A stretch of DNA of 64,000 nt from Eukaryota sp. TZLM1-RC (lineage: Eukaryota; Protista; Metamonada: BaSk clade), in assembly GCA_040285825.1 (NCBI GenBank), contig JAUPSS010000004.1, positions 992,001-1,056,000 of the forward strand. Direction: 5' to 3'. Under the pieces are notes generated by a model that was given only the letters and a program-made list of their open reading frames with translations, was not told the origin of the DNA and searched no databases. Positions 3,217 to 62,363 of the stretch are shown here, one piece after another. Position 1 is the stretch's first letter. Every line of letters begins with the position of its first letter. Position numbers and translations under genes: made by a program.

Positions 3217-4389
3217 TCATAACCAAACATATTGATCTGACAATTCTTTCCTACAACTTTCTATCCTTTTAGCAGCTTTTGGATGACCAACATCTTTGGC
3301 CTTGTCGTACCATTCAATAGCTTGGTGAAGGGCTTTAGGTACACCGTAACCGTGTTCATAACATTTACCTAAATTGAACATTCCATACTCATGGCCCAAT
3401 TCAGCAGCTTTTTGGTAATAAAACACTGCTTGAGAATAGTCTTGTTTAACAAAACGAGCAAGGCGAAAACATTGACCTAAATTATTCATAGCACCAGCAT
3501 GACCAGCATCAGCACCTTTTTTGAAACAATAAAAAGCTTGTTGATGGTCTTGGTCAACACCTTCGCCATCTCTATAACAACATCCTAAATTAAACATAGC
3601 TCTACTATTACCAGCTTCAGCTGCTTTGATATACCAATGAAAGGCTTGTTGGTAATTCTTTTCGACACCAAGGCCATGGTCATAACAATAACCTAAATTA
3701 ATCATAGCTGATGAATTACCAGCTTCAGCAGCTCTTCTCGACCAATAAACTGCTTCTTGGTAGTGTTTATCATTGTAAAATTGTTTTGCTTTTTCAAACA
3801 TTTGTTGAGGCGTATCACCATCACTTGACTCAACTTCTAAATTTTCAAACCCACTCTTCAAATTTTGGTCACGATCACTACCTTCTTGATCCTCATTAGA
3901 AGATCTATCATCAGCTAATTTTTGGTTGGGATTACCGAAATTCTGATTGTTTGTAATATTATTATGGTAAACTTGAATTGAATTAATTTGTTCTTTTAAT
4001 CCCTTTTCTTTTTGAGAAAGTTCGTCTATTTTGGAATTTGAATCGTCAATTTCTATTCTCAAATCATTGATTAATTGATCTCTATTATTGATTTCTTGAT
4101 CCTTTTCGACCAACGTTTGGCTTAATTCTTGATTTCTAGAGACAAGATTAAAGTTCTGAAGTGTAAATTCTTGGTTTAATTCATCAGAATTAGATTGAGC
4201 CTGGTGTAAACTTTGATTTTCTTGAGTTAATTCTTGCATTGTCTGATTTAAATCAATATTTGATTTTCGGAAAATTTCATTTTCTAGGCTCAAATCCTCA
4301 ATAATTTGGTCTTTTTCAGCACAATTCTGACAATTTTGCCTTACATTGGGACTAAATTCATTTATCAAAGGCAAATCATTATAAATCAT
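3217..4389 (-). CDS. Kinase-less coiled-coil + Sel1-repeat protein (4 full repeats plus cap)
   Basis: Uninterrupted 390-aa ORF; collinear with the post-kinase part of 33857-36465. Confidence 0.75.
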   Translation of the reverse strand: MIYNDLPLINEFSPNVRQNCQNCAEKDQIIEDLSLENEIFRKSNIDLNQTMQELTQENQSLHQAQSNSDELNQEFTLQNFNLVSRNQELSQTLVEKDQEINNRDQLINDLRIEIDDSNSKIDELSQKEKGLKEQINSIQVYHNNITNNQNFGNPNQKLADDRSSNEDQEGSDRDQNLKSGFENLEVESSDGDTPQQMFEKAKQFYNDKHYQEAVYWSRRAAEAGNSSAMINLGYCYDHGLGVEKNYQQAFHWYIKAAEAGNSRAMFNLGCCYRDGEGVDQDHQQAFYCFKKGADAGHAGAMNNLGQCFRLARFVKQDYSQAVFYYQKAAELGHEYGMFNLGKCYEHGYGVPKALHQAIEWYDKAKDVGHPKAAKRIESCRKELSDQYVWL

Positions 4390-5847: not shown

Positions 5848-6909
5848 TCATAACCAAACATATTGATCTGACAATTCTTTCCTACAACTTTCTATCCTTT
5901 TAGCAGCTTTTGGATGACCAACATCTTTGGCCTTGTCGTACCATTCAATAGCTTGGTGAAGGGCTTTAGGTAAACCGTAACCGTGTTCATAACATTTACC
6001 TAAATTGTATATTCCATACTCATTACCCAATTCAGCAGCTTTTTGGTAATAAAACACTGCTTGAGAATAGTCTTGTTTAACAAAACGAGCAAGGCGAAAA
6101 CATTGACCTAAATTATTCATAGCACCAGCATGACCAGCATCAGCACCTTTTTTGAACCAATAAAAAGCTTGTTGATGGTCTTGGTCAACACCTTTGCCAT
6201 CTCTATAACAACAACCTAATTCAACCATAGCACAAGCATTACCAGCATCAGCACCTTTTTTGAACCAATAAAAAGGTTGTTGATGGTCTTGATCAACACC
6301 TTTGCCATCTCTATAACAACAGCCTAATTCAACCAAAGCAAAATCATTACTAGCATCAGCACCTTTTTTGAACCAACGAAAAGCTTCTTGATGGTCTTGA
6401 CCGACACCTTTGCCATCTCTATAACAACAACCTAATTCAACCATAGCAAAATCATTACTAGCATCAGCACCTTTTTTGAACCAATGAAAAGCTTCTTGAT
6501 GGTCTTGACCGACACCTTTGCCATCTCTATAACAACAACCTAATTCAACCATAGCAAAATCATTACTAGCATCAGCACCTTTTTTGAACCAATGAAAAGC
6601 TTCTTGATGGTCTTGACCGACACCTTTGCCATCTCTATAACAACAGCCTAATTCAACCATAGCATAAGCATTACCAGCATCAGCACCTTTTTTGCACCAA
6701 TAAACAGCTTGTTGATGGTCTTGATCAACACCTTTGCCATCTCTATAACAACAGCCTAAATTACACATAGCATAAGCATTACCAGCATCAGCACCTTTTT
6801 TGAACCAATAAAAAGCTTGTTGATGGTCTTGATCAACACCTTTGCCATCTCTATAACAACAGCCTAATTCAACCATAGCATAAGCATTACCAGCATCAGC
6901 ACCTTTTTT
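5848..6909 (-). pseudogene. Sel1-repeat gene, part downstream of the family A insertion (9 repeats)
   Basis: ORF 5848-6948; the upstream part resumes at 10375-10495. Confidence 0.85.
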
Positions 6910-15562: not shown

Positions 15563-15596
15563 TGCAAATCATTGTACCACGAAGATTTGGATTGTG

Positions 15597-16363: not shown

Positions 16364-17020
16364 TAACGTTACAAGATACTGAATTAACCCAGGATACCGA
16401 TTGAAAAACCGAGGTAATCTATGAATAATGGCAAATTGAATCCGAGAGCACCATAAAACAATATCAAATCTTTTCATTGTTTTTTGTTTACCCATTGTTT
16501 AATTTTATTAAAAACCCATAAATCAACATCTAAATAATCCATCTCTCCCAAAACAAAAAGACTAGATGCAACTAGTATCGTTATTGATACGATTAACTGA
16601 GACTGATAAGAAGTTCCTAGTTTCGTAATGTCAAAGGTCAGGTTCTCTATTATGTTGGGGAAGATTCAACAAGTGTGGTTCAATACATAGATCATTTGTT
16701 CGTAAAAATATAACAAACTCGAAAGTGAAAATGATTTGTCTTGAAGGTGAAAATACGCTGTTCTACAATCAAATCATCATTAATTAATTTGCTCTTGTAG
16801 TTTTTGTAAGAATTCAAATGTATTGACACTGATATGGAAAAAGAACATTGTAGGATTTCCCTTTGGAGGGTTTGTCAATGTTGGATCAATCAGATAACCA
16901 AAAAGGCTTGTCAATAGGAAAATGTCACACAAGTTGAATAACACCCGATGTATTCAATCGTTTTTCAAATAACCCTTTGTGTAGCATTTTATTGGTAACA
17001 ATTTGGAAAAACTAAACCCT

Positions 17021-21000: not shown

Positions 21001-24000
21001 GCTCGCTTAATTGCCCTTAAAAAAAGTCAATCCAAAATCCGTCCAATTGCAATTGGAGAATCTTTTTCAAGAATTCTTGCGTCTCTTGTTTTCAATAGAA
21101 TTGGAAAAAAAGCCAAGGAACTTTTCAGTCCGTTTCAATTTGGAATCAAGACAATTGATGGTGCTTCTTCTGCTGCTCTTTCGTCGGATGTGTTGTTTAA
21201 TTCTAGTGATTCTAATTACATCTTCAATTTAGATTTTAAGAATGCTTTCAATTCTGTATCTCGTTCTTCCATTTTACCTTTGCTGCAAAAGCATTTTCCT
21301 GAAGTTGAGCCTTTTTTCTATTCATTTTATGGAAAATCATCCTCATTGGTCTATGAAAATTTTGACCTGCTTTCGTCTTCAGGTGTTAAACAAGGTGATC
21401 CACTTGGTCCTTTTTTCTTTTGTCTGGCAATTCATCCATTAATGTGCGAATTGAAAGAAAAATTCCCAGAAATAGATATTGTAGCATATATGGATGACAT
21501 TTCTGTAATTGCTCCTATTACAATTCTGAAACAAATAGCAACTTTTATTCAACAGCGTTATGAAGATATTGGTCTCTCATTGAATATCTCCAAATGTTTG
21601 ATTATTGGCCATGAACCAATTGATTTTTTTCATTAATGATGTAAATGTCCCCTTTATCAATTATGATCAGTCTGGTTTTCGTTTTTTTGGGTTGTTATCT
21701 CGGAAATATTGATGAAGTGAAAAGCCAACTTTCGACTCTGTTGACTCAATTTGGAAATGAATTAGAATCAATAGAAAATTTAAATATTGAGAAACATTTG
21801 AAATTCTTTTTCCTCAAAATCTGTTATTCTGGAAAATTTACTCATATTTTGAGATCAACATCACCATCAATTTCCTTGGAGTTTTGTCGCATTTTTAATG
21901 AACAAAGAACTAATTTTTTAGCAAAATTATTGGAAATTGATGCATCTCAGTTACGAAGCCACATTTTTTTGTGGTACAAATTTTGGTGGTGTTGATTTTC
22001 ATAAGTCAAGCTACCTTTGTAAAGCTGCCTTTATTGGAGGTGGAAAGAATTTTATTTATGAATTTGTGAATCGTTTTCCTGAAAAAATTCATCTCATTGA
22101 AAATTGTGGCAGCTCCTATCTTATTTCTTTGCAACAGGAAATTGAAACTCTTTCACCCAATATTTGGGCTAAATGTTTCCCCTCTGATATTGTGGAACTT
22201 CCTTCAAGAAGCTTGCTCTCCTTACCATTGACTTTTGCAAAATTGCAGAAAAAATTTTGAAAGTTTTAGAAAACTTGGATTATATTGTACGTCTTAGCTT
22301 GGCTAAGGAAAAAAATCCCGTTTTTGCAAACTTTTTGATTGATCTTGAAGACAGTTGCTCAAGTTGCTTAATCTCCCAAATTCCCAACATTTACGGCCTT
22401 CTACTTAATGATCTCCAATGGACCACTGCAATGAGATTGAGATGTTTTCTATGGCCTTGCTCATTGCCAAATGATTTAATTTGTCGCTGCAAGAGTGTTG
22501 TTACGCTTTCCCATATTTTTAAACTGTAAGTATTTCATAACTTATCGCTCACTTGTTCATGACTCAGTTCGTGATCAATTATATGCCATGTGCAAAAGTT
22601 TCAATATAGAGGCATTTATTGAGCCACTAGTACGTAAGCTGTCTTCAGATCAAACTGATGATTCCTTTGGTAAAAGAAGGGCAGATTTAGTAGCTCCAGG
22701 GATCGATGGTGTTCTCAATGTTGTAGACGTTGTCTCAGTGGATGTTTGCAAAAATTCTGCTGCTCGTTTAGTGTATTCCGCTGACTCGCCGTTATCTAAC
22801 GCCGAAAAAAAAGAAGATAAAAAAAATATGAATAACCTTTGGCACAGTTAGGTAGAGTGGAACATGTGAAATATCAGTTTGTGCCGTTTGCAATTTCTCT
22901 TTTTGGCAATATTGGACCTTCAGGCTTGCACTTTTTGGAAAATTTTAAAAAAGTGTTACTGAATAGGTCTGGTAAAACAATGAACTCCACTTTCTGGTTA
23001 AATAGAATTGTTTTTTGCATTTTCAAGTCTATTCCAACAATGATTTCAAAGGCACTTTTAGCTATTGGTGTAGAATATGAACGTAATGCTGTGAGTAGGT
23101 TCAGTAATAGTGACGCTTGTTTGGAGGATATTGAATTCTAGATGGTTATTTTTATCTCAATAAATATTCCAGTTTTTAAAAAAAACTCGATAGCTCAGGA
23201 AAATCAGATTTAATAACTTCAAAAATTGCTTCTCGCTTTACAGAATTAAAAGCATTTTTAAAGTCGAGATTAAAAATAAAATTATTTTCCTCTGCATTAA
23301 AAAAGGTATCAGAGGCAATAGCAGCAACAGAAGCACCATCAATTGTTTTGATTCTAAATTGATGAGGATTCAAAAATGTAGAAGCTTTGTCTTTGACACG
23401 ATCGAAGACAATTGATGCCAGCTAACGAGATAGAGATTCACCAACAGCAATTGGTCGTATTCCATCAGGATTGATTCCGTTTCCAGGCTTTACTAAAGCA
23501 ATCAGACGTGCTGCGAGTAATTCAAATGGAGGATTATTTTTCAAAACAATCAATTGTTGAAAATAGTGGGCTAGATCATCAGCAATTTCGGGAGCACTGG
23601 AACACGCTATTTTTAACAGATCAAAAGAAATTCCAGATGGGCCTGCTGCTTTCCCCTTTGGCAATTTTTGAATAGCTTTAAGAACTTCAATTGCAGTAAT
23701 AGGATTTTCAATCCAAAAAGGACACACTTCAGGCTTGCTGCACTTGAAATTTTCTTGAGGATGCAACTTTTGAAGTTTTTCAAGGGTATCAGAGTTTGCA
23801 TCAGCCAAAGAAGAGGAAAACAAAGACTGCTTTGCGGCACCATAACGACCACGTAAGCACAATTTACGGCAAATTTTTGATTTTACAATTTTTCTATTTC
23901 CAAATTTTTTTCTTAAAACAATTTTTGTTTTTTCTAGCAAAATATTTCCAGAAGGATGAAATATTCCACTTATTATTTTTCAATTCAGAAGTAAAATTTC

Positions 24001-24800
24001 TCATTTCCATTGAGAAGGGGATTGTGCTGGCGGGACTTATTTCTACTGGGATCCGGATCGGGGGTCTTACGGTATCAACGGCTTTACAATTCGTACAAAA
24101 CAGAAGTTTTCGACCATTTCGTGAATCTGCAACATCTTTTTTGCAAAATGGACAACAAAAATTACTGTTTTCAGAAGGGGAAGAAGAGGGAACACTAGAA
24201 GCATTTAACTGTTGATCGTCAGAAACATTATTTTCAGCACCTTTCACAACGGCAACAGCTGGAACAGAACATTTGAGAATTTGTTGAGCAGATTTTAATT
24301 CAAATTCTCTTTTTTGTTTCTCAGGGCACGTTCTCGAATTATGACCACTGATACCACAAATCGAACATTTTTTAGAACCTTTTAATGGCAGTGGTTTCAT
24401 TTTTTCAGTTCTTTCAATTTTGTCAAAAGTAGAAATAGACTTTTGACTTTTTGCAGTTTCAGCTGGAGAAAACAAATTTCGAGAAACGGAGTTGTTAATA
24501 GAACGCGCAACAGAACGCAAGGAACGTAATGGTGGTTTTTCTGTGTTTTTTTCTGGTACAATGATCAGTTTTTGAATGAAAATTTTTTTGAGATGAATTT
24601 CGAGCATAGCTTGTATTGTGGGGAGAGTGGGGAGGTGGAGTGGATGAGCTTGATCTGACTGGTAGAATCTTTGCTTGGGCGTTCCAATCAGTATCAGAGT
24701 CACTATCAGCCAAAGGCATCGTTTTGACAGAGAAACAGTACGACTTTGACGCCTTGACAGAAAGTGAAATATGAAAGGGTTGACTAAGGGAGGGAGAAAA
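18084..24800 (-). mobile_element. Family A element (copy 2), interrupted by family B
   Basis: Same termini and target as 6910-10374; the RT-RLE part 18109-19860 is open; right TSD at 24801-24812. Confidence 0.95.
19940..23179 (+). mobile_element. Full-length CRE-like family B element (about 3.24 kb) nested antisense in the RT of A, 12-bp TSD
   Basis: CSKCRKSGHNIATC knuckle, RPIAIGE, QGDPLGP, YMDD, CRC..H..C, HDSVRD, RRAD..VDV, ending EDIEF* then AATAAA and A8. TSD aaaaaactcgat at 19928-19939 and 23180-23191. Confidence 0.95.
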
Positions 24801-25244
24801 AGCACCTTTTTTGAACCAATAAAATGCTTGTTGATGGTCTAGATCGACACCATGACCATCTCTATAACAACAACCTAAACTTAACATACCTACTCTATTA
24901 CCAGCTTCAGCAGCTCTACTTCAACATTGTATTATTATCATTTTATTATTGGTAGAATCTCAATACCACAACTTGAATGATTATTTTTAAAACCATCAGT
25001 TGTTTATGAAATTGTTGAAATTTACCATCACTTCGAAATCAAGTGACAATTTTAAAACATCCTTATGATGAATGAAACAATTCATTATAGAAATTGCTGG
25101 TGAATGTGGTGGTGCATAATTTCCATGTAATTCATTTTCAATAATTTGTCGAAATTTTCGCCCTCCTTGACCAACTGAATGATGATTAAAACCCTGACTA
25201 ACTACACCGTTTACTTTGAATAATTTTCATTATTCTCTTTTTTT

Positions 25245-25469
25245 GGAAGTTCTGCTCCATCGAAAGCAACTTGAAAACTAACGGGGATGAAATCTGGTAG
25301 GGGACATTGGCAACACAAACATCAAAAAGAGGAGATCTACCTTGAGAAAGTCGCTGGAAATGATCTGAACACGACTTCTGGCTCTCGTGTCTGCTTGGAA
25401 TTGCTTGGTTAATTCTACAACCATGCGAGGGTCATATTCTACCGCAATAACTTTCTTTGCTACGTCTAA
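25245..25469 (-). pseudogene. DIM1: DIM1 fragment, copy 2
   Basis: Near-identical to 10818-11042. Confidence 0.85.
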
Positions 25470-25903
25470 GACTATTTATGCAAGTAAATCCAAGAACGGA
25501 AAATTAATTTAATTATTTTCTATTTACATTTATAATGTTCAACTTGCGATATTTCGATGGAGCCAACAACAAATATACCAAATATGTTTAATTTGAATAA
25601 AAAGTTGAAATAAAAACATTGACCCGTTGTAAACAATATGAGTTAGTAAGCTTAACAATTTTAATTAACATTAAACATATTTTGCTTTTTGAAAAACATT
25701 TCGAAGTACCAGATCTCAATTTCAATTTGAGTGATCTTTGGTAAATTGTTTTGGTTGGTTTTAAATTTTTTTTAAACACATTATTATTGGTTTTAAAAGG
25801 CTAATTAATCATCACTTTTTATTGAATAATGTTTGATAAAAACTGAAAATAACTAAATGTAACATTGATAAACAAAGGTATTTATTGAATAGACCACAGT
25901 ACT

Positions 25904-28900
25904 TTATAATCTTCTACTTCTTGAACTTCTGGTAAGCTTTCTTTTACAATTTTCTATCATTTTAGCAGCTCCTGAATAACCAGCATTCTTGGCTTTCTCG
26001 TACCATTCAATAGCTTGATGAAGGTCTTTAGGTATACCGTAAACGTGTTCATAACAATCACCTAAACTGAACATTCCAACCTCATTACCCAATTCAGCAG
26101 CTTTTTGGAAATAAAACACTGCTTGAGAATAGTGTTGTTCAACACCATGACCCAGGCGATAGCAAACACCTAAACCAAACATAGCATCAGCATGACCAGC
26201 ATCAGCACCTTTTTTGAACCAATAGAAAGCTTGTTGATGGTCTTGATCAACACCTTCACCATTTCTATAACAAACACCTAAATTAAACATAGCTCTACTA
26301 TTACCAGCTTCAGCTGCCTTGCTAAACCAATAAAAGGCTTGTTGGTGATCCTTTTCTACACCATGACCATGTTTATTAAATTAACCATAGCACCGGCATT
26401 ACCAGCATCAGCACCTTTTTTGCACCAATAAAAAGCTTGTTGATGGTCTTGATCAACACCTTTGCCATCTCTATAACAACAGCCTAAATTACACATAGCA
26501 TCAGCATCACCAGCATCAGCACCTTTTTTTTTAAAAAAACTGGAATATTTATTGACCTTTTTTGATCCAATAAAATGCTTGTTGATGGTCTTGATCAACA
26601 CCTTCACCATTTCTATAACAAACACCTAAATTAAACATAGCTCTACTATTACCAGCTTCAGCTGCCTTGCTAAACCAATAAAAGGCTTGTTGGTGACCCT
26701 TTTCTATACCATGACCATGTTTATTACAATAACCTAAATTAACCATAGCACCAGCATGACTAGCATCAGCACCTTTTTTGAACCAATGGAAAGCTTGTTG
26801 ATGGTCTTGATCAACACCTTTGCCATCTCTATAACAACAACCTAAATTACAGATAGCATAAGCATTACCAGCATCAGCACCTTTTTTGAACCAATAAAAT
26901 GCTTGTTGATGGTCTTGATCAACACCTTCTCCATCTCTATAACAACAACCTAAATTAAACATAGCTCTACTATTACCAGCTTCAGCTGCCTTGCTATACC
27001 AATAAAAAGCTTGTTGGTAATCCTTTTCTACACCAAGACCATGGTTATAATAATAACCTAAATTAACCATAGCACCAGCATGACCAGCATCAGCACCTTT
27101 TTTGAAACAATAAAAAGCTTGTTGATGGTCTTGGTCAACACCTTCTCCATCTCTATAACAACAACCTAAATTAAACATAGCTCTACTATTACCAGCTTCA
27201 GCTGCCTTGCTAAACCAATAAAAGGCTTGTTGGTGATCCTTTTCTACACCAAGACCATGGTTATAATAATAACCTAAATTAACCATTGCACCAACATGAC
27301 CAGCATCAGCACCTTTTTTGAAACAATAAAAAGCTTGTTGATGGTCTTGGTCAACACCTTCGCCATCTCTATAACAACATCCTAAATTAACCATAGCACC
27401 AGCATGACCAGCATCAGCACCTTTTTTGAAACAATAAAAAGCTTGTTGATGGTCTTGGTCAACACCTTCGCCATCTGTATAACAACAGCCTAAATTAAAC
27501 ATAGCTCTACTATTACCAGCTTCAGCTGCCTTGCTAAACCAATAAAAGGCTTGTTGGTGATCCTTTTCTACACCAAGACCATGGTTATAATAATAACCTA
27601 AATTAACCATAGCACCAGCATGACCAGCATCAGCACCTTTTTTGAAACAATAAAAAGCTTGTTGATGGTCTTGGTCAACACCTTCTCCATCTCTATAACA
27701 ACAACCTAAATTAAACATAGCTCTACTATTACCAGCTTCAGCTGCCTTGCTAAACCAATAAAAGGCTTGTTGGTGATCCTTTTCTACACCAAGACCATGG
27801 TTATAATAATAACCTAAATTAACCATTGCACCAACATGACCAGCATCAGCACCTTTTTTGAAACAATAAAAAGCTTGTTGATGGTCTTGGTCAACACCTT
27901 CGCCATCTCTATAACAACATCCTAAATTAACCATAGCACCAGCATGACCAGCATCAGCACCTTTTTTGAAACAATAAAAAGCTTCTTGATGGTCTTGGTC
28001 AACACCTTCTCCATCTCTATAACAACAACCTAAATTAAACATAGCTCTACTATTACCAGCTTCAGCTGCCTTGCTAAACCAATAAAAGGCTTGTTGGTGA
28101 TCCTTTTCTACACCAAGACCATGGTTATAATAATAACCTAAATTAACCATAGCACCAACATGACCAGCATCAGCACCTTTTTTGAAACAATAAAAAGCTT
28201 GTTGATGGTCTTGGTCAACACCTTCGCCATCTCTATAACAACATCCTAAATTAACCATAGCACCAGCATGACCAGCATCAGCACCTTTTTTGAAACAATA
28301 AAAAGCTTGTTGATGGTCTTGGTCAACACCTTCGCCATCTCTATAACAACATCCTAAATTAAACATAGCTCTACTATTACCAGCTTCAGCTGCCTTGCTA
28401 AACCAATAAAAGGCTTGTTGGTGATCCTTTTCTACACCAAGACCATGGTTATAATAATAACCTAAATTAACCATAGCACCAGCATGACCAGCATCAGCAC
28501 CTTTTTTGAAACAATAAAAAGCTTGTTGATGGTCTTGGTCAACACCTTCGCCATCTCTATAACAACATCCTAAATTAACCATAGCACCAGCATGACCAGC
28601 ATCAGGACCTTTTTTGAAACAATAAAAAGCTTGTTGATGGTCTTGGTCAACACCTTCGCCATCTCTATAACAACAGCCTAATTCAACCATAGCATAAGCA
28701 TTACCAGCATCAGCACCTTTTATGAAACAATAAAAAGCTTGTTGATGGTCTTGGTCAACACCTTCGCCATCTCTATAACAACATCCTAAATTAAACATAG
28801 CACCAGCATGACCAGCATCAGCACCTTTTTTGAACCAATAGAAAGCTTGTTGATGGTCTTGATCAACACCTTCTCCATCTCTATAACAACAACCTAAATT

Positions 28901-31900
28901 AAACATAGCTACACTATCACCAGCATCAGCTGCCTTGCTATACCAATAAAAAGCTTGTTGGTAATCCTTTTCTACACCAAGACCATGGTTATAATAATAA
29001 CCTAAATTAACCATAGCACCAGCATGACCAGCATCAGCACCTTTTTTGAAACAATAAAAAGCTTGTTGATGGTCTTGGTCAACACCTTCTCCATCTCTAT
29101 AACAACAACCTAAATTAAACATAGCTCTACTATTACCAGCATCAGCACCTTTTTTGAAACAATAAAAAGCTTGTTGATGGTCTTGGTCAACACCTTCGCC
29201 ATCTCTATAACAACATCCTAAATTAAACATAGCTCTACTATTACCAGCTTCAGCTGCCTTGCTAAACCAATAAAAGGCTTGTTGGTGATCCTTTTCTACA
29301 CCAAGACCATGGTTATAATAATAACCTAAATTAACCATAGCACCAACATGACCAGCATCAGCACCTTTTTTGAAACAATAAAAAGCTTGTTGATGGTCTT
29401 GGTCAACACCTTCGCCATCTCTATAACAACATCCTAAATTAACCATAGCACCAGCATGACCAGCATCAGCACCTTTTTTGAAACAATAAAAAGCTTGTTG
29501 ATGGTCTTGGTCAACACCTTCGCCATCTGTATAACAACAGCCTAAATTAAACATAGCTCTACTATTACCAGCTTCAGCTGCCTTGCTAAACCAATAAAAG
29601 GCTTGTTGGTGATCCTTTTCTACACCAAGACCATGGTTATAATAATAACCTAAATTAACCATAGCACCAACATGACCAGCATCAGCACCTTTTTTGAAAC
29701 AATAAAAAGCTTGTTGATGGTCTTGGTCAACACCTTCGCCATCTCTATAACAACATCCTAAATTAACCATAGCACCAGCATGACCAGCATCAGCACCTTT
29801 TTTGAAACAATAAAAAGCTTGTTGATGGTCTTGGTCAACACCTTCGCCATCTGTATAACAACAGCCTAAATTAAACATAGCTCTACTATTACCAGCTTCA
29901 GCTGCCTTGCTAAACCAATAAAAGGCTTGTTGGTGATCCTTTTCTACACCAAGACCATGGTTATAATAATAACCTAAATTAACCATAGCACCAGCATGAC
30001 CAGCATCAGCACCTTTTTGAAACAATAAAAGCTTGTTGATGGTCTTGGTCAACACCTTCGCCATCTCTATAACAACATCCTAAATTAACCATAGCACCAG
30101 CATGACCAGCATCAGGACCTTTTTTTGAAACAATAAAAGCTTGTTGATGGTCTTGGTCAACACCTTCGCCATCTCTATAACAACAGCCTAATTCAACCAT
30201 AGCATAAGCATTACCAGCATCAGCACCTTTTATGAAACAATAAAAAGCTTGTTGATGGTCTTGGTCAACACCTTCGCCATCTCTATAACAACATCCTAAA
30301 TTAAACATAGCACCAGCATGACCAGCATCAGCACCTTTTTTGAACCAATAGAAAGCTTGTTGATGGTCTTGATCAACACCTTCTCCATCTCTATAACAAC
30401 AACCTAAATTAAACATAGCTACACTATCACCAGCATCAGCTGCCTTGCTATACCAATAAAAAAAGCTTGTTGGTAATCCTTTTCTACACCAAGACCATGG
30501 TTATAATAATAACCTAAATTAACCATAGCACCAGCATGACCAGCATCAGCACCTTTTTTGAAACAATAAAAAGCTTGTTGATGGTCTTGGTCAACACCTT
30601 CTCCATCTCTATAACAACAACCTAAATTAAACATAGCTCTACTATTACCAGCATCAGCACCTTTTTTGAAACAATAAAAAGCTTGTTGATGGTCTTGGTC
30701 AACACCTTCGCCATCTCTATAACAACATCCTAAATTAAACATAGCTCTACTATTACCAGCTTCAGCTGCCTTGCTAAACCAATAAAAGGCTTGTTGGTGA
30801 TCCTTTTCTACACCAAGACCATGGTTATAATAATAACCTAAATTAACCATAGCACCAACATGACCAGCATCAGCACCTTTTTTGAAACAATAAAAAGCTT
30901 GTTGATGGTCTTGGTCAACACCTTCGCCATCTCTATAACAACATCCTAAATTAACCATAGCACCAGCATGACCAGCATCAGCACCTTTTTTGAAACAATA
31001 AAAAGCTTGTTGATGGTCTTGGTCAACACCTTCGCCATCTGTATAACAACAGCCTAAATTAAACATAGCTCTACTATTACCAGCTTCAGCTGCCTTGCTA
31101 AACCAATAAAAGGCTTGTTGGTGATCCTTTTCTACACCAAGACCATGGTTATAATAATAACCTAAATTAACCATAGCACCAGCATGACCAGCATCAGCAC
31201 CTTTTTTGAAACAATAAAAAGCTTGTTGATGGTCTTGGTCAACACCTTCTCCATCTCTATAACAACAACCTAAATTAAACATAGCACCAGCATGACCAGC
31301 ATCAGCACCTTTTTTGAAACAATAAAAAGCTTGTTGATGGTCTTGGTCAACACCTTCTCCATCTCTATAACAACAACCTAAATTAAACATAGCTCTACTA
31401 TTACCAGCTTCAGCACCTTTTATGAAACAATAAAAAGCTTGTTGATGGTCTTGGTCAACACCTTCGCCATCTCTATAACAACATCCTAAATTAAACATAG
31501 CACCAGCATGACCAGCATCAGCACCTTTTTTGAACCAATAGAAAGCTTGTTGATGGTCTTGATCAACACCTTCTCCATCTCTATAACAACAACCTAAATT
31601 AAACATAGCTACACTATCACCAGCTTCAGCTGCCTTGCTATACCAATGAAAGGCTTGTTGGTAATTCTTTTCGACACCAAGGCCATGGTCATAACAATAA
31701 CCTAAATTAATCATAGCTGAAGAATTACCAGCTTCAGCAGCTCTTCTCGACCAATAAACTGCTTCTTGGTAGTTTTCATCATTGTAAAATTCCAATCCTT
31801 TTTCAAACATTTGTTCAGGCGTATCACCATCACTTGACTCAACTTCTAAATTTTCAAACCCACCCTCCAAATTTTGGTCACGATCACTACCTTCTTGATC

Positions 31901-32398
31901 CTCATTAGAAGATCTATCATCAGCTAATATTTGGTTGGGCTTACCGAAATTCTGATTATTTGTAATATTATTATGGTAAACTTGAATTGAATTAATTTGT
32001 TCTTTTAATCCCTTTTCTTTTTGAGAAAGTTCGTCTATTTTGGAATTTGAATCGTCAATTTCTATTCTCAAATCATTGATTAATTGATCTCTATTATTGA
32101 TTACTTGATCCTTTTCAACCAAAGTTTGACTTAATTCATGATTTCTAGAGACAAGATTAGAGTTCTGAAGTGTCAATTCTTGGTTTAATTCATCAGAATT
32201 AGATTGAGCCTGGTGTAAACTTTGATTTTCTTGAGTTAATTCTTGAATTGTCTGATTTAAATCAATATTTGATTTTCGGAAAATTTCATTTTCTAGGCTC
32301 AAATCCTCAATAATTTGGTCTTTTTCAGCACAATTCTGACAATTTTGCCTTACATTGGGACTAAATTCATTTATCAAAGGCAAATCATTATAAATCAT
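25904..32398 (-). pseudogene. Giant kinase-less coiled-coil + Sel1 gene (about 53 repeats), broken by homopolymer frameshifts, a 34-bp retroinsertion and a 10-bp deletion
   Basis: ORFs 30419-32398, 30006-30416, 26549-30064, 26356-26625 and 25904-26290 form one 108-bp array; repeats counted by hand. Confidence 0.85.
26530..26554 (-). mobile_element. 25-bp family B 3' tail inserted in a Sel1 repeat, 9-bp TSD
   Basis: Minus strand CAATAAATATTCCAGTTTTTTTAAA matches the family B end at 23158-23179; TSD acctttttt at 26521-26529 and 26555-26563. Confidence 0.9.
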
Positions 32399-32432
32399 TG
32401 CAAATCATTGTACCACGAAGATTTGGATTGTG

Positions 32433-33203
32433 TGCCACTAATGAAGCATTTGTAACAAAAATGAGATTATATTTGAACATCCCCATTAACCAATTATTAT
32501 CAAAAGAAAAATGTATTTGTTCGAATTCACCTCAACTCACTTTGCGCCATGCTCTAAATTGATAACTTATCGTTCCTCATTACATGATGCTGTTAGAGAC
32601 ACTGTTTTCAATATGGCACAAACTGCAAGGATATCGTGCATCAAAGAGCCCCTGCTAAAGGAAACACTATCTCTGAATAATTTTGGTTCTGACGATAGAG
32701 AAGATGTATACTGTGATTGGATTGATAATTCTGAAGCTATTGTTGACTTTGTCTCATGTAATGTTGCAAACGATACTTTGGTTCACAGAAGAAAACTTAA
32801 TCCTGTGGCTGCTCTGGATTTTAAAGCAAAAGAAAAACTTAGAAAATATGATAAAGAAATTGAAGATGCAAATGTCGATAGAAATACACAGCTGGTTTTT
32901 ATTGCTTTCCCATTTTCGATAAATGGAAGATTATCAGTTGAAGCAGAAACTTTTTTTGGATGACTTCCAAAAATGGTGAAAGAAAAAAACAATGAAAAGA
33001 TTTGTTATTCTTTATGGCACTTTCGGATTCAATTTGCCATTATTAATAGCTTACCTCGGTTTTTCAATCGAATTAGAGAAGCTTTAGCTGTACAGCAAGC
33101 AGATGAAGATTATGTAGAGAAAATCTTGGTTCAATGATAGTCGTCACATTAGTTATGATTTAATTTAATCAAGTGTGCAAATTCAATAAATAAATAATTA
33201 TAA
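32433..33203 (+). mobile_element. 5'-truncated family C (copy 3)
   Basis: Copy of 4424-5190. Confidence 0.75.
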
Positions 33204-33856
33204 CGTTACAAGATACTGAATTAACCCAGGATACCGATTGAAAAACCGAGGTAATCTATGAATAATGGCAAATTGAATCCGAGAGCACCATAAAACAATA
33301 TCAAATCTTTTCATTGTTTTTTGTTTACCCATTGTTTAATTTTATTAAAAACCCATAAATCAACATCTAAATAATCCATCTCTCCCAAAACAAAAAGACT
33401 AGATGCAACTAGTATCGTTATTGATACGATTAACTGAGACTGATAAGAAGTTCCTAGTTTCGTAATGTCAAAGGTCAGGTTCTCTATTATGTTGGGGAAG
33501 ATTCAACAAGTGTGGTTCAATACATAGATCATTTGTTCGTAAAAATATAACAAACTCGAAAGTGAAAATGATTTGTCTTGAAGGTGAAAATACGCTGTTC
33601 TACAATCAAATCATCATTAATTAATTTGCTCTTGTAGTTTTTGTAAGAATTCAAATGTATTGACACTGATATGGAAAAGAACATTGTAGTATTTCCCTTT
33701 GGAGGGTTTGTCAATGTTGGATCAATCAGATAACCAAAAAGGCTTGTCAATAGGAAAATGTCACACAAGTTGAATAACACCCGATGTATTCAATCGTTTT
33801 TCAAATAACCCTTTGTGTAGCATTTTATTGGTAACAATTTGGAAAAACTAAACCCT

Positions 33857-36465
33857 TCATAACCAAACATATTGATCTGACAATTCTTTCCTACAACTTT
33901 CTATCCTTTTAGCAGCTTTTGGATGACCAACATCTTTGGCCTTGTCGTACCATTCAATAGCTTGGTGAAGGGCTTTAGGTACACCGTAACCGTGTTCATA
34001 ACATTTACCTAAATTGTATATTCCATACTCATTACCCAATTCAGCAGCTTTTTGGTAATAAAACACTGCTTGAGAATAGTCTTGTTTAACAAAACGAGCA
34101 AGGCGAAAACATTGACCTAAATTATTCATAGCACCAGCATGACCAGCATCAGCACCTTTTTTGAACCAATAAAAAGCTTGTTGATGGTCTTGGTCAACAC
34201 CTTTGCCATCTCTATAACAACAACCTAATTCAACCATAGCACCAGCATGACCAGCATCAGCACCTTTTTTGAAACAATAAAAAGCTTGTTGATGGTCTTG
34301 ATCAACACCTTCTCCATCTCTATAACAACAACCTAAATTAAACATAGCTACACTATCACCAGCTTCAGCTGCCTTGCTAAACCAATAAAAGGCTTGTTGG
34401 TGATCCTTTTCTACACCAAGACCATGGTTATAATAATAACCTAAATTAACCATAGCACCAACATGACCAGCATCAGCACCTTTTTTGAAACAATAAAAAG
34501 CTTGTTGATGGTCTTGGTCAACACCTTCGCCATCTCTATAACAACATCCTAAATTAACCATAGCACCAGCATGACCAGCATCAGCACCTTTTTTGAAACA
34601 ATAAAAAGCTTGTTGATGGTCTTGGTCAACACCTTCTCCATCTCTATAACAACAACCTAAATTAAACATAGCTCTACTATTACCAGCTTCAGCACCTTTT
34701 ATGAAACAATAAAAAGCTTGTTGATGGTCTTGGTCAACACCTTCGCCATCTCTATAACAACATCCTAAATTAAACATAGCACCAGCATGACCAGCATCAG
34801 CACCTTTTTTGAACCAATAGAAAGCTTGTTGATGGTCTTGATCAACACCTTCTCCATCTCTATAACAACAACCTAAATTAAACATAGCTACACTATCACC
34901 AGCTTCAGCTGCCTTGCTATACCAATGAAAGGCTTGTTGGTAATTCTTTTCGACACCAAGGCCATGGTCATAACAATAACCTAAATTAATCATAGCTGAA
35001 GAATTACCAGCTTCAGCAGCTCTTCTCGACCAATAAACTGCTTCTTGGTAGTTTTCATCATTGTAAAATTCCAATCCTTTTTCAAACATTTGTTCAGGCG
35101 TATCACCATCACTTGACTCAACTTCTAAATTTTCAAACCCACCCTCCAAATTTTGGTCACGATCACTACCTTCTTGATCCTCATTAGAAGATCTATCATC
35201 AGCTAATATTTGGTTGGGCTTACCGAAATTCTGATTATTTGTAATATTATTATGGTAAACTTGAATTGAATTAATTTGTTCTTTTAATCCCTTTTCTTTT
35301 TGAGAAAGTTCGTCTATTTTGGAAATTGAATCGTCAATTTCTATTCTCAAATCATTGATTAATTGATCTCTATTATTGATTACTTGATCCTTTTCAACCA
35401 AAGTTTGACTTAATTCATGATTTCTAGAGACAAGATTAGAGTTCTGAAGTGTCAATTCTTGGTTTAATTCATCAGAATTAGATTGAGCCTGGTGTAAACT
35501 TTGATTTTCTTGAGTTAATTCTTGAATTGTCTGATTTAAATCAATATTTGATTTTCGGAAAATTTCATTTTCTAGGCTCAAATCCTCAATAATTTGGTCT
35601 TTTTCAGCACAATTCTGACAATTTTGCCTTACATTGGGACTCAATTCATTTATCAAAGGCAAACCTTCAGCATAATTTTCCAATAAACCCAATTGATGAA
35701 TAATTTGGTCAATCGTTGGTCTTTTTGAGGGATCACTGGACATACAATCATTAACCAATTTTTTCAAAATTTCTGGATCTTCTTGATCAAATGGAAGCTC
35801 TTTTCCCTGATACTTAGCACCCAATAAAGCTAATTGAGTATTTAAACCCTCAAAAGCTACTTTATTAGTAAGTAATTCATATAAAATTACCCCAATAGAA
35901 TAAACATCAGAAGCTTCTGTTATTCTATTGTCAAAAGCCTCCAAAGCGGCATATTTGGGTGTAAACGTGAGAGAAGTGAATATTCGTGTTGTGTTAGCTA
36001 TAACTTTGGAAGTACCAAAGTCAGCTATTCTTAATTGGCCATTAATTAATAGAATATTCTGGGGTTTTAGGTCACCATGAACGACGGCTTTTCCATGTAA
36101 CATCTTGATAGCAGAGCATAGATCCTTGGCTAGTCGGAGAGAGAGAGGGGATCACGTGAGAGAGGAGAGGGGGTAGGAAGGGAGGAAGTAGCGCGTTCCA
36201 TGACAATGCCCATCTTATCATCAAAGTAAGCAATGCCGAAAACACGGAGGATGGCAGGGCTGTTGAGGAAAGAAAGGAGGGCAATCTCTTTCTTGAGTAG
36301 CTTCTTCCCTTCTTCAGTGAGGGAGACCATCTTGACTGCTATATCGAGGGAGAACCAGCGGGCGGAGTAAACGGAAGCAAAGCCTCCTTCACCGATCTTC
36401 TCGCCGAGTTGGATGTCGGAGGCGTTGATCTCAGGGCAGGAAAGATCGTGGTGGGATGATGTCAT
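33857..36465 (-). CDS. Non-RD (TKL-like) protein kinase + coiled coil + 10 Sel1 repeats; one frameshift in a (TC)n tract near 36137-36147
   Basis: MTSSHH start at 36465; GEGGFA, IAVK, KKE, HGDLKPQN, DFG, YAALE, DVYSIG, KRP. Joining the frames across the tract gives ...RLAKDLCSAIKMLHG. Confidence 0.85.
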
Positions 36466-40936: not shown

Positions 40937-42064
40937 TTATCTCCTTTCGGCAGCATTTGGATGACCAGCATTCTTGGCCTTTTCGTACCATTTAATAGCT
41001 TGGTGAAGGTCTTTAGGTAAACCTCTACCGTGTTCAAAACAAAAACCTAAATTGCACATTCCATGCACATTACCCAATTCAGCAGCTTTTTGGTAATAAA
41101 ACACTGCTTGAGAATAGTCTTGTTGAACACCACGGCCATTGAAATAACATTTACCTAAAATACCCATAGCACCAGCATGACCAGCATCAGCACCTTTTTT
41201 GAACCAATAAAAGGCTTGTTGATGGTCTTGATCAATACCTTGACCATCTCTATAACAACAGCCTAAATTAAACATAACGTTAGCAACACCAGCATCAGCA
41301 GCTTTTTTGAACCAATAAAAAGCTTGTTGATGGTCTTGATCAACACCTTCGCCATCTCTATAACAAACACCTAAATTAAACATAGCTACACTATTACCAG
41401 CTTCAGCTGTCTTGCTATACCAATGAAAGGCTTGTTGGTAATTCTTTTCGACACCAAGGCCTTGGTCATAACAACAACCTAATTCATACATACCAAGAAC
41501 ATGACCAGCATCAGCAGCTTTTTTGAACCAATAAAAAGCTTGTTGATGGTCTTGATCAACACCTTGACCATCTCTATAACAACAGCCTAATTCAACCAAA
41601 GCAAAATCATTACTAGCATCAGCACCTTTTTTGAACCAACGAAAAGCTTCTTGATGGTCTTGACCGACACCTTTGCCATCTCTATAACAACAACCTAATT
41701 CAACCATAGCAAAATCATTACTAGCATCAGCACCTTTTTTGAACCAATGAAAAGCTTCTTGATGGTCTTGACCGACACCTTTGCCATCTCTATAACAACA
41801 GCCTAATTCAACCATAGCATAAGCATTACCAGCATCAGCACCTTTTTTGCACCAATAAACAGCTTGTTGATGGTCTTGATCAACACCTTTGCCATCTCTA
41901 TAACAACAGCCTAAATTACACATAGCATAAGCATTACCAGCATCAGCACCGTTTTTGAACCAATAAAAAGCTTGTTGATGGTCTTGATCAACACCTTTGC
42001 CATCTCTATAACAACAGCCTAATTCAACCATAGCATAAGCATTACCAGCATCAGCACTTTTTTT
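40937..42064 (-). pseudogene. Chimeric Sel1-repeat gene downstream of element A copy 3 (10 repeats)
   Basis: ORF 40937-42103; the first 4-5 repeats match 17590-18083, the rest are unique. Confidence 0.85.
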
Positions 42065-57925: not shown

Positions 57926-60900
57926 TTATAATCTTCTACTTTTGGATCGTCTGGTGAGTTTTCTGTTAGAAACTTCTATCCTTTCAGCAGCATCTTCATC
58001 ACCAGCATCCTTGGCCTTTTCGTACCATTCAATAGCTTGGTGAAGGTCTTTAGGTACACCTTTACAGTGTTCATAACGATTACCTGAATTAAACATGGCT
58101 ATTCTATCACCAGGCTGTCTTATTGAACCAATAAAAAACTTGTTGAAGGTCTTGATCAACACCTTGACCATCTCTATAACAAACACCTAAACTACACATA
58201 GCTGATGAATTACCAGCTTCAGATGCCTTGCTACACCAATGAAAGGCTTGTTGGTAATCCATTTCTACACCAAGACCATGGTCATAACAATAACCTAAAT
58301 TAAACATAGTACCAGCATGACCAGCATCAGCAGCTCTTCTCCACCAAAAAACTGCTTCTTAATAGTGTTTATCTTTATAAGATTCCAATCCTTTTTCAAA
58401 CATTTGTTCAGGCGTATCATCATCACTTGACTCAACTTCCAAATTTTCAAACCCACCCTCCACATTTTGGTCACAATCACTACCATTGATCTCTTCTTGA
58501 TCCTCATCAGAAGAACTATCATCAGATAATTTTTGGTTAGGATTACCAAAATTCTGATTTTCTGAAAAAAAAAGAATAAAAAGCCAAGGAATTTTTCAGT
58601 CCATTTCAATTTGGAATCAAGACAATTGATGGTGCTTCTCCTGCTGCTCTTTCGTCGGATGTGTTTTTTAACTCTAGTGATTCTAATTACATCTTCAATT
58701 TAGATTTTAAGAATGCTTTCAATTCTGTATCTCGTTCTTCCATTTTACCTTTGCTGCAAAAGCATTTTCCTGAAGTTGAGCCTTTTTTCTATTTATTTTA
58801 TGGAAAATCATCCACATTGGTCTATGAAAACTTTGACCTGCTTTCGTCTTCAGCTGTTAAACAAGGTGATCCACTTGGTCCTTTTTTCTTTTGTCTGGCA
58901 ATTCATCCATTCATGTGCGAATTGAAAGAAAAATTCCCAGAAATAGATATTGCAGCATATATGGATGACATTTCTGTAATTGCTCCTATTACAATTCTGA
59001 AACAAATAGCAACTTTTATTCAACAGCGTTATGAAGATATTGGTCTCTCATTGAATATCTCCAAATGTTTGATTATTGGCAATGAACCAATTTACTTTTT
59101 CATTAATGATGTCAATGTCCCCTTTATCAATTATGATCAGTCTGGTTTTCGTTTTTTGGGTTGTTATCTCGGAAATATTGATGAAGTCAAAGGCCAACTT
59201 TCGACTCTGTTGACTCAATTTGGAAATGAATTAGAATCAATAGAAAATTTAATTATTGAGAAACATTTGAAATTCTTTTTCCTAAAAATTTGTTATTCTG
59301 GAAAATTTACTCATATTTTGAGATCAACATCACCATCAATTTCTTTGGAGTTTTGTCGAATTTTTAATGAACAAAGAACCAATTTTTTAGCAAAATTATT
59401 GGAAATTGATGCATCTCAGTTACGAAGCCACATTTTTTGTGGTACAAATTTTGGTGGTGTTGATTTTCATAAATCAAGCTGCCTTTGTAAAGCTGCCTTT
59501 ATTGGAGGTGGTAAAAATTATATTTATGAATTTGTGAATCGTTTTCCTGAAGAAATTCATCTCATTGAAAATTGTGGCAGCTCTTATCTTATTTCTTTGC
59601 AACAGGAAATTGAAACTCTTTCACCCAATATTTGTTCTAAATGTTTCCCCTCTGATATTGTGGAACTTCCTCCAAGGAGCTTGCTCTCCTTACCACTGAC
59701 TTTTGCAAAATTGCAGAAAAAAATCTTGAAAGTTTTAGAAAACTTGGATTATATTGTACGTCTTAGCTTGGCTAAAGAAAAAAATCCCGTTTTTGCGAAC
59801 TTTTTGATTGATCTTGAAGACAGTTGCTCAAGTTACCTAATCTCCCAAATTCCCAACATTTATGGCCTTCTACTCAATGATCACCAATGGACCACTGCAA
59901 TGAGAATGAGATGTTTTCTATGGCCTTGTTCTTTACCAAATGATTTAATTTGTCGCTGCAAGACTGTTGTTACGCTTTCCCATATTTTAAACTGTAAGTA
60001 TTTTATAACTTATCGCTCAATTGTTCATGACTCAGTTCGTGATCAATTATATGCCATGTGCAAAAGTTTCAATATAGAGGCATTTATTGAGCCATTAGTA
60101 CGTAAGCTGTCTTCAGATCAAACTGATGATTCCTTTGGTAGAAGAAGGGCAGATTCAGTAGCTTCTGGGATCGATGGTGTTCTCAATGTTGTAGACGTTG
60201 TCTCAGTGGATGTTTGCAAAAATTCTGCTGCTCGTTTAGTGTATTCCGCTGATTCGCCGTTATCTAACGCCGAAAAAAAGAAGATAAAAAAATATGAAGA
60301 ACCTTTGGCACAGTTAGGTAGAGTGGAACATGTGAAATATCAGTTTGTGCCGTTTGCAATTTCTCTTTTTGGCAATATTGGACCTTCAGGGTTGCATTTT
60401 TTTGAAAATTTCAAAAAAGTGTTACTGAACAGGTTTGGTAAAACAATGAATTCCACTTTCTGGTTAAATAGAATGATTTTTTGCATTTTCAAGTCTATTC
60501 CAACAATGATTTCAAAGGCACTTTTAGCTATTGGTGTAGAATATGAACGTAATGCTGTGAGTAGGTTTAGTAATAGTAACGCTTGTTTGGAGGATATTGA
60601 ATTCTAGATGGGTTTTTTATCTCAATAAATATTCAAGTTAAAAAAAATTTCTGAAATATTATTGTGGCAAATATGGATTGAATTAATTTGTTCTTTTAAT
60701 TCCTTTTCTTTTTGGGAAAGTTCGTCAATTTTGGAGTTTGAATTGCTGATTTCTATTCTCAAATCATTTATTAATTGATCTCTATTATTGATTTCTTGAT
60801 CCTTTTCAACCAGAGTTTGGCTTAATTCTTGATTTCTAGAGACAAGATTAGAGTTCTGAAGTGTTAATTCTTGATTTCTCTGATTTAAATCAATAGTAGA

Positions 60901-61743
60901 TTTTCGGAAATATTCATTTTCTAGACTCAAATACTCATTGATTTGGACTTTTTCAGCACAATTTTGACAATTTTGGCTTAAATTGGGATTAAATTCATTT
61001 ATCAAGGGCAATTCTCCAGTATAATTTTCCAATAAATTCAATTGATGAATTATTTGGTCAATCGTTGGTCTTTTTGAAGTATCACAGGACATACAATCAA
61101 TAACCATATTTTTCAAAATTTCTGGATATTCCTGATCAAATGGAAGCTCCCTTCCCTGATATTTGGCCCCCAATAGAGAAAATTGAGTATTTAAACCCTC
61201 AAAAGCTACTTTATTAGTAAGTAATTCACATAAAATTACCCCAATAGAATAAATATCAGAAGCTTCTGTTATTCTATTGTCAAAAACCTCTAAAGCCGCA
61301 TATTTAGGGGTAAAGGTGAGAGAAGTGGAATTGCCAGTATGCTCAGCAATTACTTTAGAAGTACCAAAGTCGGCGAGTCGAAGTTGGCCATTTACGAGCA
61401 GGATGTTTTGTGGCTTGAGGTCACCGTGAATGACGGATTTCGAATGGAGGACCTTCATGGCACAACAAAGTTCTTTGGCAATGGCTAGATTTTGGTTTGT
61501 TAAAGAAGAGGGAACGTTGAGAGAGGATGTGGCAAGCTCCATTACAATGCCAATCTTGTCGTCAATGTAGGTGACTCCAAAGACACGGAGGATGGCAGGA
61601 CTATTCAGCATGGAGAGGAGAGAGAATTCCTTCTTGAGTTTGGCTTTCCCTTCGTCCGTGAGGAAGACGAGCTTGATGGCGACGGCAAGGCAGAACCACT
61701 TAGCAGAGTAGACAAAAGCAGAGCCGCCTTGGCCGATCTTCTT
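57926..61743 (-). pseudogene. Second kinase / coiled coil / Sel1 gene (about 3 repeats); 5' end lost and interrupted by family B
   Basis: KIGQGGSA, VAIK, HGDLKPQN, DFG, YAALE in 60622-61743. A stop lies just upstream (61756-61758) with no Met. The Sel1 part at 57926-58567 has a frameshift near 58115. Confidence 0.85.
58568..60647 (+). mobile_element. 5'-truncated family B element with an open RT-RLE frame, 9-bp TSD
   Basis: 648-aa ORF; TSD tttctgaaa at 58559-58567 and 60648-60656; A8 tail. Confidence 0.92.
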
Positions 61744-62363
61744 ATAATTTACACATTACATAAATTTGGTTTTTTGACATTGTTATGTACTGTACTGGCC
61801 CCCAATTAAAAAATATAAAATATTTCTTCCACCACCTTGGAGTGGATTTACTCTTCATTCATTACACAGCTGCTGATTTGAGATTTCAAGTGACATCGCA
61901 ATCTTACAACAAACCAGGATTTTTAGCTTGTGTTTCACTTATTTCAATTACTTTGCCTTGTCTCGTTATTTGAATGGAAAAATTGTGCAAAAAGCAATTA
62001 CTTGTCAAAATAAAGCAAAATCAAGACACAATGAGTTTCTGTCACAGACAAAATCTTAATTTCTTTTCACCCTAGGATATAAAGATCTAGTAAACTATTG
62101 AAAACTTTTCTTATTCAATCTAAATCTAAATCAACTCTATTGAAACTGATTAGCTCCCACGTGGTTTACATGTGTTTCTACTTCTTACTCTCACTTGTCA
62201 ACCGTCCGATACATCGGAGGTTCCATAATTCAATGTTTTTCAGTTATGTTTCTTAAGTTTAAGGAACAAAAATAGAACATGTCTCATCTCGATTTAAATT
62301 CATCTGATCACTTGAATTAATTTCTTTTCTTTATTCTTTATTATTATCTCTTTGGTATTATTT

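Follow-up and report, generated by a model that had tools for sequence, protein, structure and literature searches.

Whether a protist could renew the specificity of a sensor kinase by exchanging repeats is the question raised by a 64,000-nucleotide stretch of the Skoliomonas litria TZLM1-RC genome (hereafter the window; contig JAUPSS010000004.1:992001-1056000 of assembly GCA_040285825.1, identified by a protein on record at window positions 60622-61611), in which kinase genes with arrays of Sel1 repeats and remnants of such genes are found. TZLM1-RC is the type isolate of S. litria (PMC11603281), an anaerobic metamonad that lives freely and feeds on bacteria, and its genome comprises 31.9 Mb, of which 55% is repetitive (PMC11316075). 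An initial annotation had described a rapidly evolving, repeat-shuffled receptor family with 3 to 53 Sel1 units on non-RD kinases, which lack the arginine before the catalytic aspartate and have been linked to immunity (PMC8463890). How free-living protists discriminate prey, symbionts, and viruses is still largely an open question. On balance, we lean towards a lineage-specific family of cytosolic sensor kinases, encoded in a young gene cluster, that evolves by birth and death and carries a diversifying Sel1 groove. The real signal resides in the shorter paralogues outside the window; the 53 units and the non-RD argument were the weakest parts of the annotation.

Tests for selection on the groove codons of the Sel1 units

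Pfam and a unit-by-unit scan confirmed that the proposed 108-bp Sel1 cassettes are real, in-frame units on the minus strand, which match PF08238 (E=3e-114) and encode 36-residue helix-loop-helix repeats. Further family members, gathered by homologue searches, lie on the same contig at 0.68-1.07 Mb. Three of them are clean kinase-stalk-Sel1 genes near the window, namely P9112_006073 (4 units), P9112_006157 (5), and P9112_006192 (7), and the other paralogues carry a single homopolymer indel (4 units), a truncated end (8+), or two nonsense codons (10), or have been cut by a retroelement. The full genes have 4, 4, 5, 7, 8+, 10, and 10 units, and this mix of clean and broken paralogues is birth-and-death evolution. 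An alternative genetic code was considered for the in-frame stops of paralogue L004 and rejected, as these stops, a TAG where Trp is expected and a TAA where Gln is expected, are ordinary nonsense changes.

In TPR proteins, the ligand is contacted by positions 2, 5, 6, 9, 12, and 13 (PMC1261162). Using the LG..Y anchor, we mapped these positions to unit codons 4, 7, 8, 11, 14, and 15, and this groove set was fixed before the likelihood tests. The groove codons are among the most variable of the unit: amino-acid variation was highest at codons 2-4, 7, 8, 11, 14, 15, and 17 (entropy 1.8-3.1 bits), in agreement with the initial view that variation is concentrated in the linker and first helix. 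That the second helix changes little held in part, as the nonsynonymous variation (pN) of helix B was low (0.13, compared to 0.49 at the groove codons), but two tail types differ at codons 20-23 and 28-35.

Site models applied to 26 internal units of the outside paralogues picked codons 4, 7, 11, and 14, with ratios of nonsynonymous to synonymous rates (omega) of 2.4-2.7 and p=0.004-0.024. With the last two units of eight genes on one tree, the likelihood ratio test (LRT) of M2a versus M1a gave 25.7 (p=3e-6) and an omega of about 6 for codons 7, 8, 11, 14, and 15 of the penultimate unit, which are five of the six groove codons, and for codons 4, 7, and 17 of the last unit. Part of the latter signal is due to recombination. 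When each half-unit was given its own tree and rate, the groove omega was 1.87 in the caps (p=0.03) and 1.79 in the 26 outside internal units (p=0.004), values that were reached in 0 of 19 and 0 of 8 null simulations with gene conversion, respectively. Other surface codons had an omega of 0.34-0.46 and core codons one of 0.07-0.17; the groove hence evolves at 3-4 times the rate of the remaining surface. No signal of selection was seen in helix B or the loop, and the kinase was under purifying selection across nine paralogues (omega 0.11 in the N-lobe and 0.14 in the C-lobe).

Several observations weigh against a diversifying groove. Groove omega dropped to 0.95-1.14 when the window arrays were included and to 0.7-0.8 when they were analyzed alone, and neither result was significant. 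For the outside units, a simpler test with fixed sites yielded an omega of 1.40 (p=0.11), which lies within the null range (95% LRT 5.3), and the one kinase-Sel1 gene of Skoliomonas sp. GEM-RC showed no omega above 1. The samples were small (8-26 sequences), and recombining units as well as codons that differ at several bases inflate omega tests. Moreover, a hypervariable groove is generic to TPR-like folds (PMC1261162). The predicted diversifying selection on one surface therefore has moderate support for the TPR ligand face of the fuller genes, with an omega of about 1.8, but is lost with the window arrays; from the sequence comparisons, we consider it probable, though not certain, that selection diversifies the groove in the fuller genes.

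The same observations could be explained by ordinary signalling kinase-Sel1 genes in an unstable, repeat-rich region, in which the groove is free of constraint (omega about 1), and neutral drift, through slippage and through unequal crossing-over promoted by retroelements, alters the number and order of the repeats. The groove omega in sets that contain window arrays and the GEM-RC gene, with values up to 1, would fit such drift, as would the state of the window, where most copies are broken, the longest array has little diversity, and three families of non-long-terminal-repeat (non-LTR) retroelements (A, B, and C) cover 41% of the sequence. In Rhizophagus, expanded kinase and Sel1-like genes likewise lie among transposons, in methylated, transposon-rich compartments (PMC8647823). 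We nevertheless regard neutral drift as somewhat unlikely, as it explains neither why, in two data sets of fuller genes, omega exceeded 1 for groove codons chosen beforehand nor the faster evolution of the groove than of other surface codons next to a conserved kinase.

Exchange of units and modules between paralogues

The gene that starts at 36465 is a mosaic. Its N-lobe matches paralogues L002 and L003a at 96%, its stalk L004 at 95%, and its last unit L005 at 98%, despite an N-lobe of L005 that is just 71% alike. For many units, the nearest match sits in another gene at another position, and linker, start of helix A, and end of helix A combine freely, with a linkage that decays along the unit (r2 from 0.28 to 0.05-0.08). 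Repeat shuffling, as initially proposed, is thus seen as unit and module exchange and as variation in repeat number between paralogues. As a side aspect, the neutral tree of the penultimate unit (e.g. 34144-34037) was 4-5 times longer for the helix-A half than for the helix-B half (7 compared to 1.4-1.7), which reflects either alleles of old age or a swapping of cassettes that involves just helix A.

The units had been called near-identical. In the long array, 12% of the pairs are indeed at least 98% identical, but the mean pairwise nucleotide identity there is just 83%, and units of the full genes are 60-83% identical. Highly conserved repeats are defined by an internal repeat identity of at least 85% across 100 or more amino acids. 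Unit pairs with at least 85% identity made up 36-57% of the pairs in the window arrays and 0-10% in the clean genes L003b, L005, and L007; in L003a, such identity comes from duplicated blocks. Mutagenesis of the type known from diversity-generating retroelements was rejected as a source of variation, as the variable codons change at all four bases and the neighboring reverse transcriptases (RTs) are those of non-LTR elements that are dispersed and end in poly(A).

Kinase and predicted architecture

The structure model of family protein P0003 comprised the kinase, a single 119-residue helix, 43 disordered residues that form an acidic linker, and a canonical Sel1 solenoid, with no fixed packing between the parts (predicted template modeling score 0.42). 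The solenoid itself was modeled with a predicted local distance difference test value of 98 and template modeling scores of 0.85-0.87 to 6ok3, 4bwr, and 6ork, and helix A covered unit positions 3-15. No signal peptide or transmembrane helix was found in the family protein, whose sole hydrophobic peak corresponds to kinase strands 2-3, and the term receptor is therefore not supported in the membrane sense. Pfam detected the kinase and Sel1 only and no NACHT or NB-ARC domain, the middle part being the long helix and the disordered linker.

The VAxK lysine, the alphaC glutamate, HxD..N, and DFG are kept, as would be expected for an active, TKL-like eukaryotic kinase, although the group assignment is loose. 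The best relatives with solved structures were TAK1 (E=1e-25), closely followed by NEK7, and ZAK and RAF; neither IRAK nor a plant RLK was among the 60 best solved-structure matches. In sequence comparisons, the kinase is placed in a Skoliomonas-specific clade outside the IRAK/Pelle/RLK group. The reported exchange of HRD for HGD was confirmed in both window kinases, in which the lysine, the alphaC glutamate, and DFG are intact, and HGD is found in all nine paralogues. However, HGD is the majority state of the clade (41 of 54 kinases from three Skoliomonas species), with HRD limited to one S. litria subclade, and it occurs whatever the partner domain, for instance with HSP70, DUSP, LRR, TPR, and UBA. 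The motif was therefore rejected as a mark of the Sel1 branch. Within the clade, LRR, TPR, Sel1, UBA, MATH, and ubiquitin domains are interchangeable partners of the kinase, often together with an N-terminal RING, and DUSP and HSP70 occur as well. Since the link between non-RD kinases and immunity has been drawn mainly within the IRAK/RLK group, to which this kinase would not belong, HGD adds little here, and the non-RD argument of the initial annotation is not supported. The modular, sensor-like partner domains are better circumstantial evidence. Two related genes may be mentioned: RCL1_008855 encodes a RING-like-kinase(HGD)-TPR protein with near-identical TPRs, and GEMRC1_000208 of GEM-RC (L008:10001-12193) encodes RING-kinase(HHD)-Sel1 with one frameshift and repeats of another type, whose nucleotide identity to the units of S. 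litria is 59%.

Proposed mechanism

In the mechanism that we favor, a TKL-like kinase with HGD would act together with a long stalk formed by the coiled coil, an acidic linker that is flexible, and a solenoid made of 4-10 Sel1 units, whose concave groove would bind a ligand, be it a protein or a peptide. New grooves would arise when the 108-bp units undergo unequal crossing-over and gene conversion, and selection on the six groove codons together with unit recombination would renew specificity. Ligand binding could cluster or unlatch the kinases via the coiled coil and thereby lead to phosphorylation. The ligands may be variable foreign proteins from bacterial prey, a symbiont, or a virus; overall, we consider a non-self ligand of the groove well conceivable but still short of probable, and an immune role of the family is something that we can only infer. 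Retroelements and segmental duplication would supply turnover and wreckage, with the window as a turnover zone of the family and the array at 25.9-32.4 kb as a kinase-less, broken by-product of the same recombination that could at most donate units. A much more far-reaching version, which we judge to be unlikely, would be a modular cell-autonomous immune repertoire, in which a kinase clade with a coiled-coil stalk swaps LRR, TPR, and Sel1 heads, and helix-A cassettes recombined from neighboring broken arrays, with the 48-unit array as a donor library, give rise to novel specificities directed at bacteria or viruses, which might even vary among the cells of one culture.

Relation to known repeat-based recognition systems

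Among fungal NLRs with highly conserved repeats, positively selected TPR sites lie on the concave face (PMC4986451, PMC12222747). The Skoliomonas proteins resemble these NLRs (Podospora HNWD proteins such as het-d and het-e; NB-ARC/NACHT-TPR and -ANK proteins) in being cytosolic with an N-terminal signalling domain and a C-terminal solenoid of similar repeats, in varying in repeat number, in exchanging repeats within and between genes, and in probably having selected sites on the concave face. They differ in that a coiled coil stands in place of NACHT/NB-ARC, the repeats are Sel1 and not WD, TPR, or ANK, the full genes mostly have less than 85% internal identity, and selection is weaker. If our reading is correct, the design of conserved scaffold, selected groove, and shuffled repeats would not be confined to fungal NLRs but would include a kinase that bears Sel1 repeats and has no nucleotide-binding oligomerization domain. 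The three clean paralogues, which come from a culturable organism and whose repeats differ for the most part at six residues of the groove, would be a directly testable set. The interest is tempered, as neither the design nor the pairing of domains is new in itself, the signal of selection is of moderate strength, and the window copies are broken.

A kinase and a Sel1 array in one protein are also found in Glomeromycota (Rhizophagus, Diversispora, Geosiphon), chytrids, Bacteroidales, and Magnetococcus, and the Glomeromycota genes share the high copy number among transposons. In some of these fusions, the identity between repeats is 70-79% and the catalytic loop is of the non-RD kind, with HCD in Diversispora and HGD in Bacteroidales. 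In contrast to the S. litria genes, however, their kinases fall outside the Skoliomonas clade, and the Glomeromycota matches place Sel1 before the kinase; the Skoliomonas fusion thus looks independent. The bacterial kinase-Sel1 proteins P0167, P0198, P0199, P0202, and P0175 (one named Bacteroidales), with HGD loops and repeats that are 60-79% identical, are a convergent look-alike.

In the ROCO-LRR and NB-ARC-TPR genes of Ectocarpus, one repeat corresponds to one exon, unlike the Skoliomonas arrays of intron-free 108-bp units in one frame. Common to both is that they are repeat-shuffled candidate immune receptors of a eukaryote that is neither animal nor plant (PMC3341825). XA21, FLS2, and EFR of the IRAK/Pelle/RLK group likewise lack the arginine before the catalytic aspartate (PMC8463890), but the Skoliomonas kinase is nearest to TAK1, NEK7, ZAK, and RAF, has no transmembrane or extracellular part, and has HGD throughout its clade. 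The slr/Hcp genes of Helicobacter also belong to a Sel1-repeat family, and positive selection on their surface residues has been described, but they are bacterial, secreted, and without a kinase; the available portion of that account does not report near-identical shuffled cassettes (PMC1941758). No metamonad recognition system of this kind turned up in the literature searched, and we found no publication on this kinase-Sel1 family; the genome paper mentions neither kinases nor Sel1. Searches for Sel1 with high internal conservation and a kinase in protists, or for Sel1, TKL, and Rhizophagus, gave nothing relevant, with incomplete coverage.

Copies in the window and the long array

The unit-by-unit scan recovered the reported arrays of 3, 4, 9, and 10 units and two further arrays of 6, but the supposed 53 units are 48 units, an interruption, and 5 units (Table 1). 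A single gene architecture for all arrays did not hold either, as a kinase is present only in the 36465 gene and the 61.7-kb gene. The former is the sole window copy that combines kinase, coiled coil, and full array, and it is frameshifted. A short-read contig (36152-36398) agrees with its N-lobe except for one difference; the frameshift in the TC run is either a real slip or a Nanopore error, and no short-read contig spans the run. The 61.7-kb gene ends in three decayed Sel1 units at 58322-58004. The 10-unit array at 41 kb, like the 9-unit arrays, is headless behind a family A element. A further observation on the kinase genes is a step in GC content (36100-36465 and 61300-61750), with a GC of 0.5 in the first ~350 nt (about 0.6 at third codon positions, GC3) and 0.35 in the remainder (GC3 about 0.27). 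It is no chimera peculiar to the 36465 copy, as it is present in all nine paralogues (GC3 0.49-0.65 in the N-lobe and 0.22-0.38 in the C-lobe), and it may reflect an effect of 5' gene ends in this genome.

Table 1. Positions of kinase-Sel1 copies and retroelements within the window
Feature	Position	Strand	Remarks
36465 gene: kinase N-lobe	36130..36465	-	ATG at 36465; Gly loop, VAxK lysine, alphaC glutamate; GC ~51%
36465 gene: TC dinucleotide run between kinase lobes	36137..36147	-	8 nt longer than in L002, resulting in frameshift
36465 gene: kinase C-lobe	35669..36129	-	HGDLKPQN (HGD at 36071-36079), DFG, AALE
36465 gene: coiled-coil stalk and acidic disordered linker	35096..35668	-	
36465 gene: capping helix pair, 10 Sel1 units, C-terminal capping helix	33857..35095	-	units at 35008-33929
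Long copy: coiled coil and cap, kinase-less	31730..32398	-	99.6% identical to neighboring full gene (36465)
Long copy: 48 Sel1 units	26546..31729	-	12 head types, 16 tail types; 3-, 11-, and 14-unit higher-order repeats
Long copy: 34-nt insertion	26521..26555	-	3' end of family B retroelement with target-site duplication; stop at 26549-26551
Long copy: five more units and C-terminal helix	25904..26520	-	second unit with 10-nt deletion near 26367
Second kinase copy (HGD)	58398..61800	-	coiled coil split by 2-kb family B retroelement (58574-60647)
Kinase-less 4-unit copy	3217..4389	-	duplicate 14390-15562; related copy 49878-51055
Headless 9-unit array behind family A retroelement	5848..6909	-	duplicates 17021-18083; 10-unit variant 40937-42064
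Retroelement	6920-10380	-	RT and C-terminal region
Retroelement	19940-23185	+	RT and C-terminal region
Retroelement, 3' fragment of multi-copy family C (non-LTR)	32406..33190	+	short-read depth 250-790 compared to ~3 for single-copy DNA

In the long copy, the family C fragment replaces the kinase and provides a cryptic ATG at 32398, and the first four units are identical to those of the adjacent 36465 gene. The reading frame ends after 48 units because the 34-nt family B footprint creates a stop. Past the insertion follow one unit, one unit with the 10-nt deletion, and three units from a different paralogue; from the deletion onward, the tail is nearly identical to the paralogue at 49878-50400, so that the copy is chimeric. 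The stop and the subsequent deletion rule out a 53-unit protein, and the idea of a receptor variant had to be abandoned for a kinase-less, broken array with only 12 head types. The long array is a recent unequal-crossover product that adds copies rather than diversity.

As the assembly was made with early Nanopore methods (Albacore 2.1.3, ABruijn, 41x), with Illumina data used for polishing (PMC11316075), homopolymer indels in the repeats are suspect; five of these at 30018-30464 (units 12-17, net zero) are probably Nanopore errors. It could even be that the array and the segmental duplicates of 9-11 kb were inflated during assembly and that the frameshifts arose there too, in which case there would be less diversity in reality and the 36465 gene might be undamaged. 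On the side of the reads, the data were fragmentary short-read contigs of a single isolate. The assembly method, the restriction of the homopolymer indels to units 12-17, and the short-read depth of 2.4-2.5 for pieces present 3-4 times in the window, which is like that of single-copy sequence (2.9-3.5), would agree with an artefact, and some of the segmental duplicates may be assembly duplicates. However, a 136-nt array junction with seven copies in the assembly had a short-read depth of 28 compared to ~3 for single-copy DNA, which supports a real amplification of the array. Diagnostic variants also recur in register across the higher-order repeats, a target-site duplication flanks the 34-nt insertion, and the outside paralogues differ by 5-30%, well above error. 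Taken together, this makes a general artefact very unlikely.

The 4-unit copies and the long copy lack a kinase and start at one common junction with the family C retroelement. Such copies might be functional as decoys or dominant regulators that form stalk heterodimers or titrate ligand, with the long array as a high-avidity binder. This would be in line with the same kinase-less start and cryptic ATG in four copies, one of which has diverged to 90%, with the open frames of 390 amino acids in the 4-unit copies, and with the short-read depth that backs a real multi-copy array. Against it, the one junction common to all four copies points to a single event that segmental duplication has spread, and a retroelement fragment of opposite orientation occupies the upstream promoter region. 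Moreover, two of these copies are broken downstream, and the frames had no match in the protein collection. We therefore hold a function as decoy to be highly improbable and prefer to see these copies as by-products of family turnover.

Retroelements and duplications around the copies

The three retroelement families encode an RT and a C-terminal region. Family B is nested within family A with a target-site duplication, and the C-terminal region of the window retroelements has, by eye, the look of what we take to be a restriction-like endonuclease. The family A insertion (6909/10380), which was copied three times by duplication, and the family B footprint at 26521-26555 share the A6 run of the Sel1 unit. 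Targeting of Sel1 by the retroelements was nevertheless rejected, as 3' ends of A (at least eight other sites) and B (six other sites) lie in unrelated sequence; the preference of both families is for A-runs and not specific for Sel1. Segmental duplicates at 99% identity were found for 8-8767 and 11175-19939 (8.8 kb) and for 17280-26432 and 41262-50406 (9.2 kb). An Rfam search gave no match. At 51700-52300 on the plus strand, a decayed frame with a zinc-ribbon-like end has, judged by eye, some likeness to a TnpB/Fanzor-type gene.

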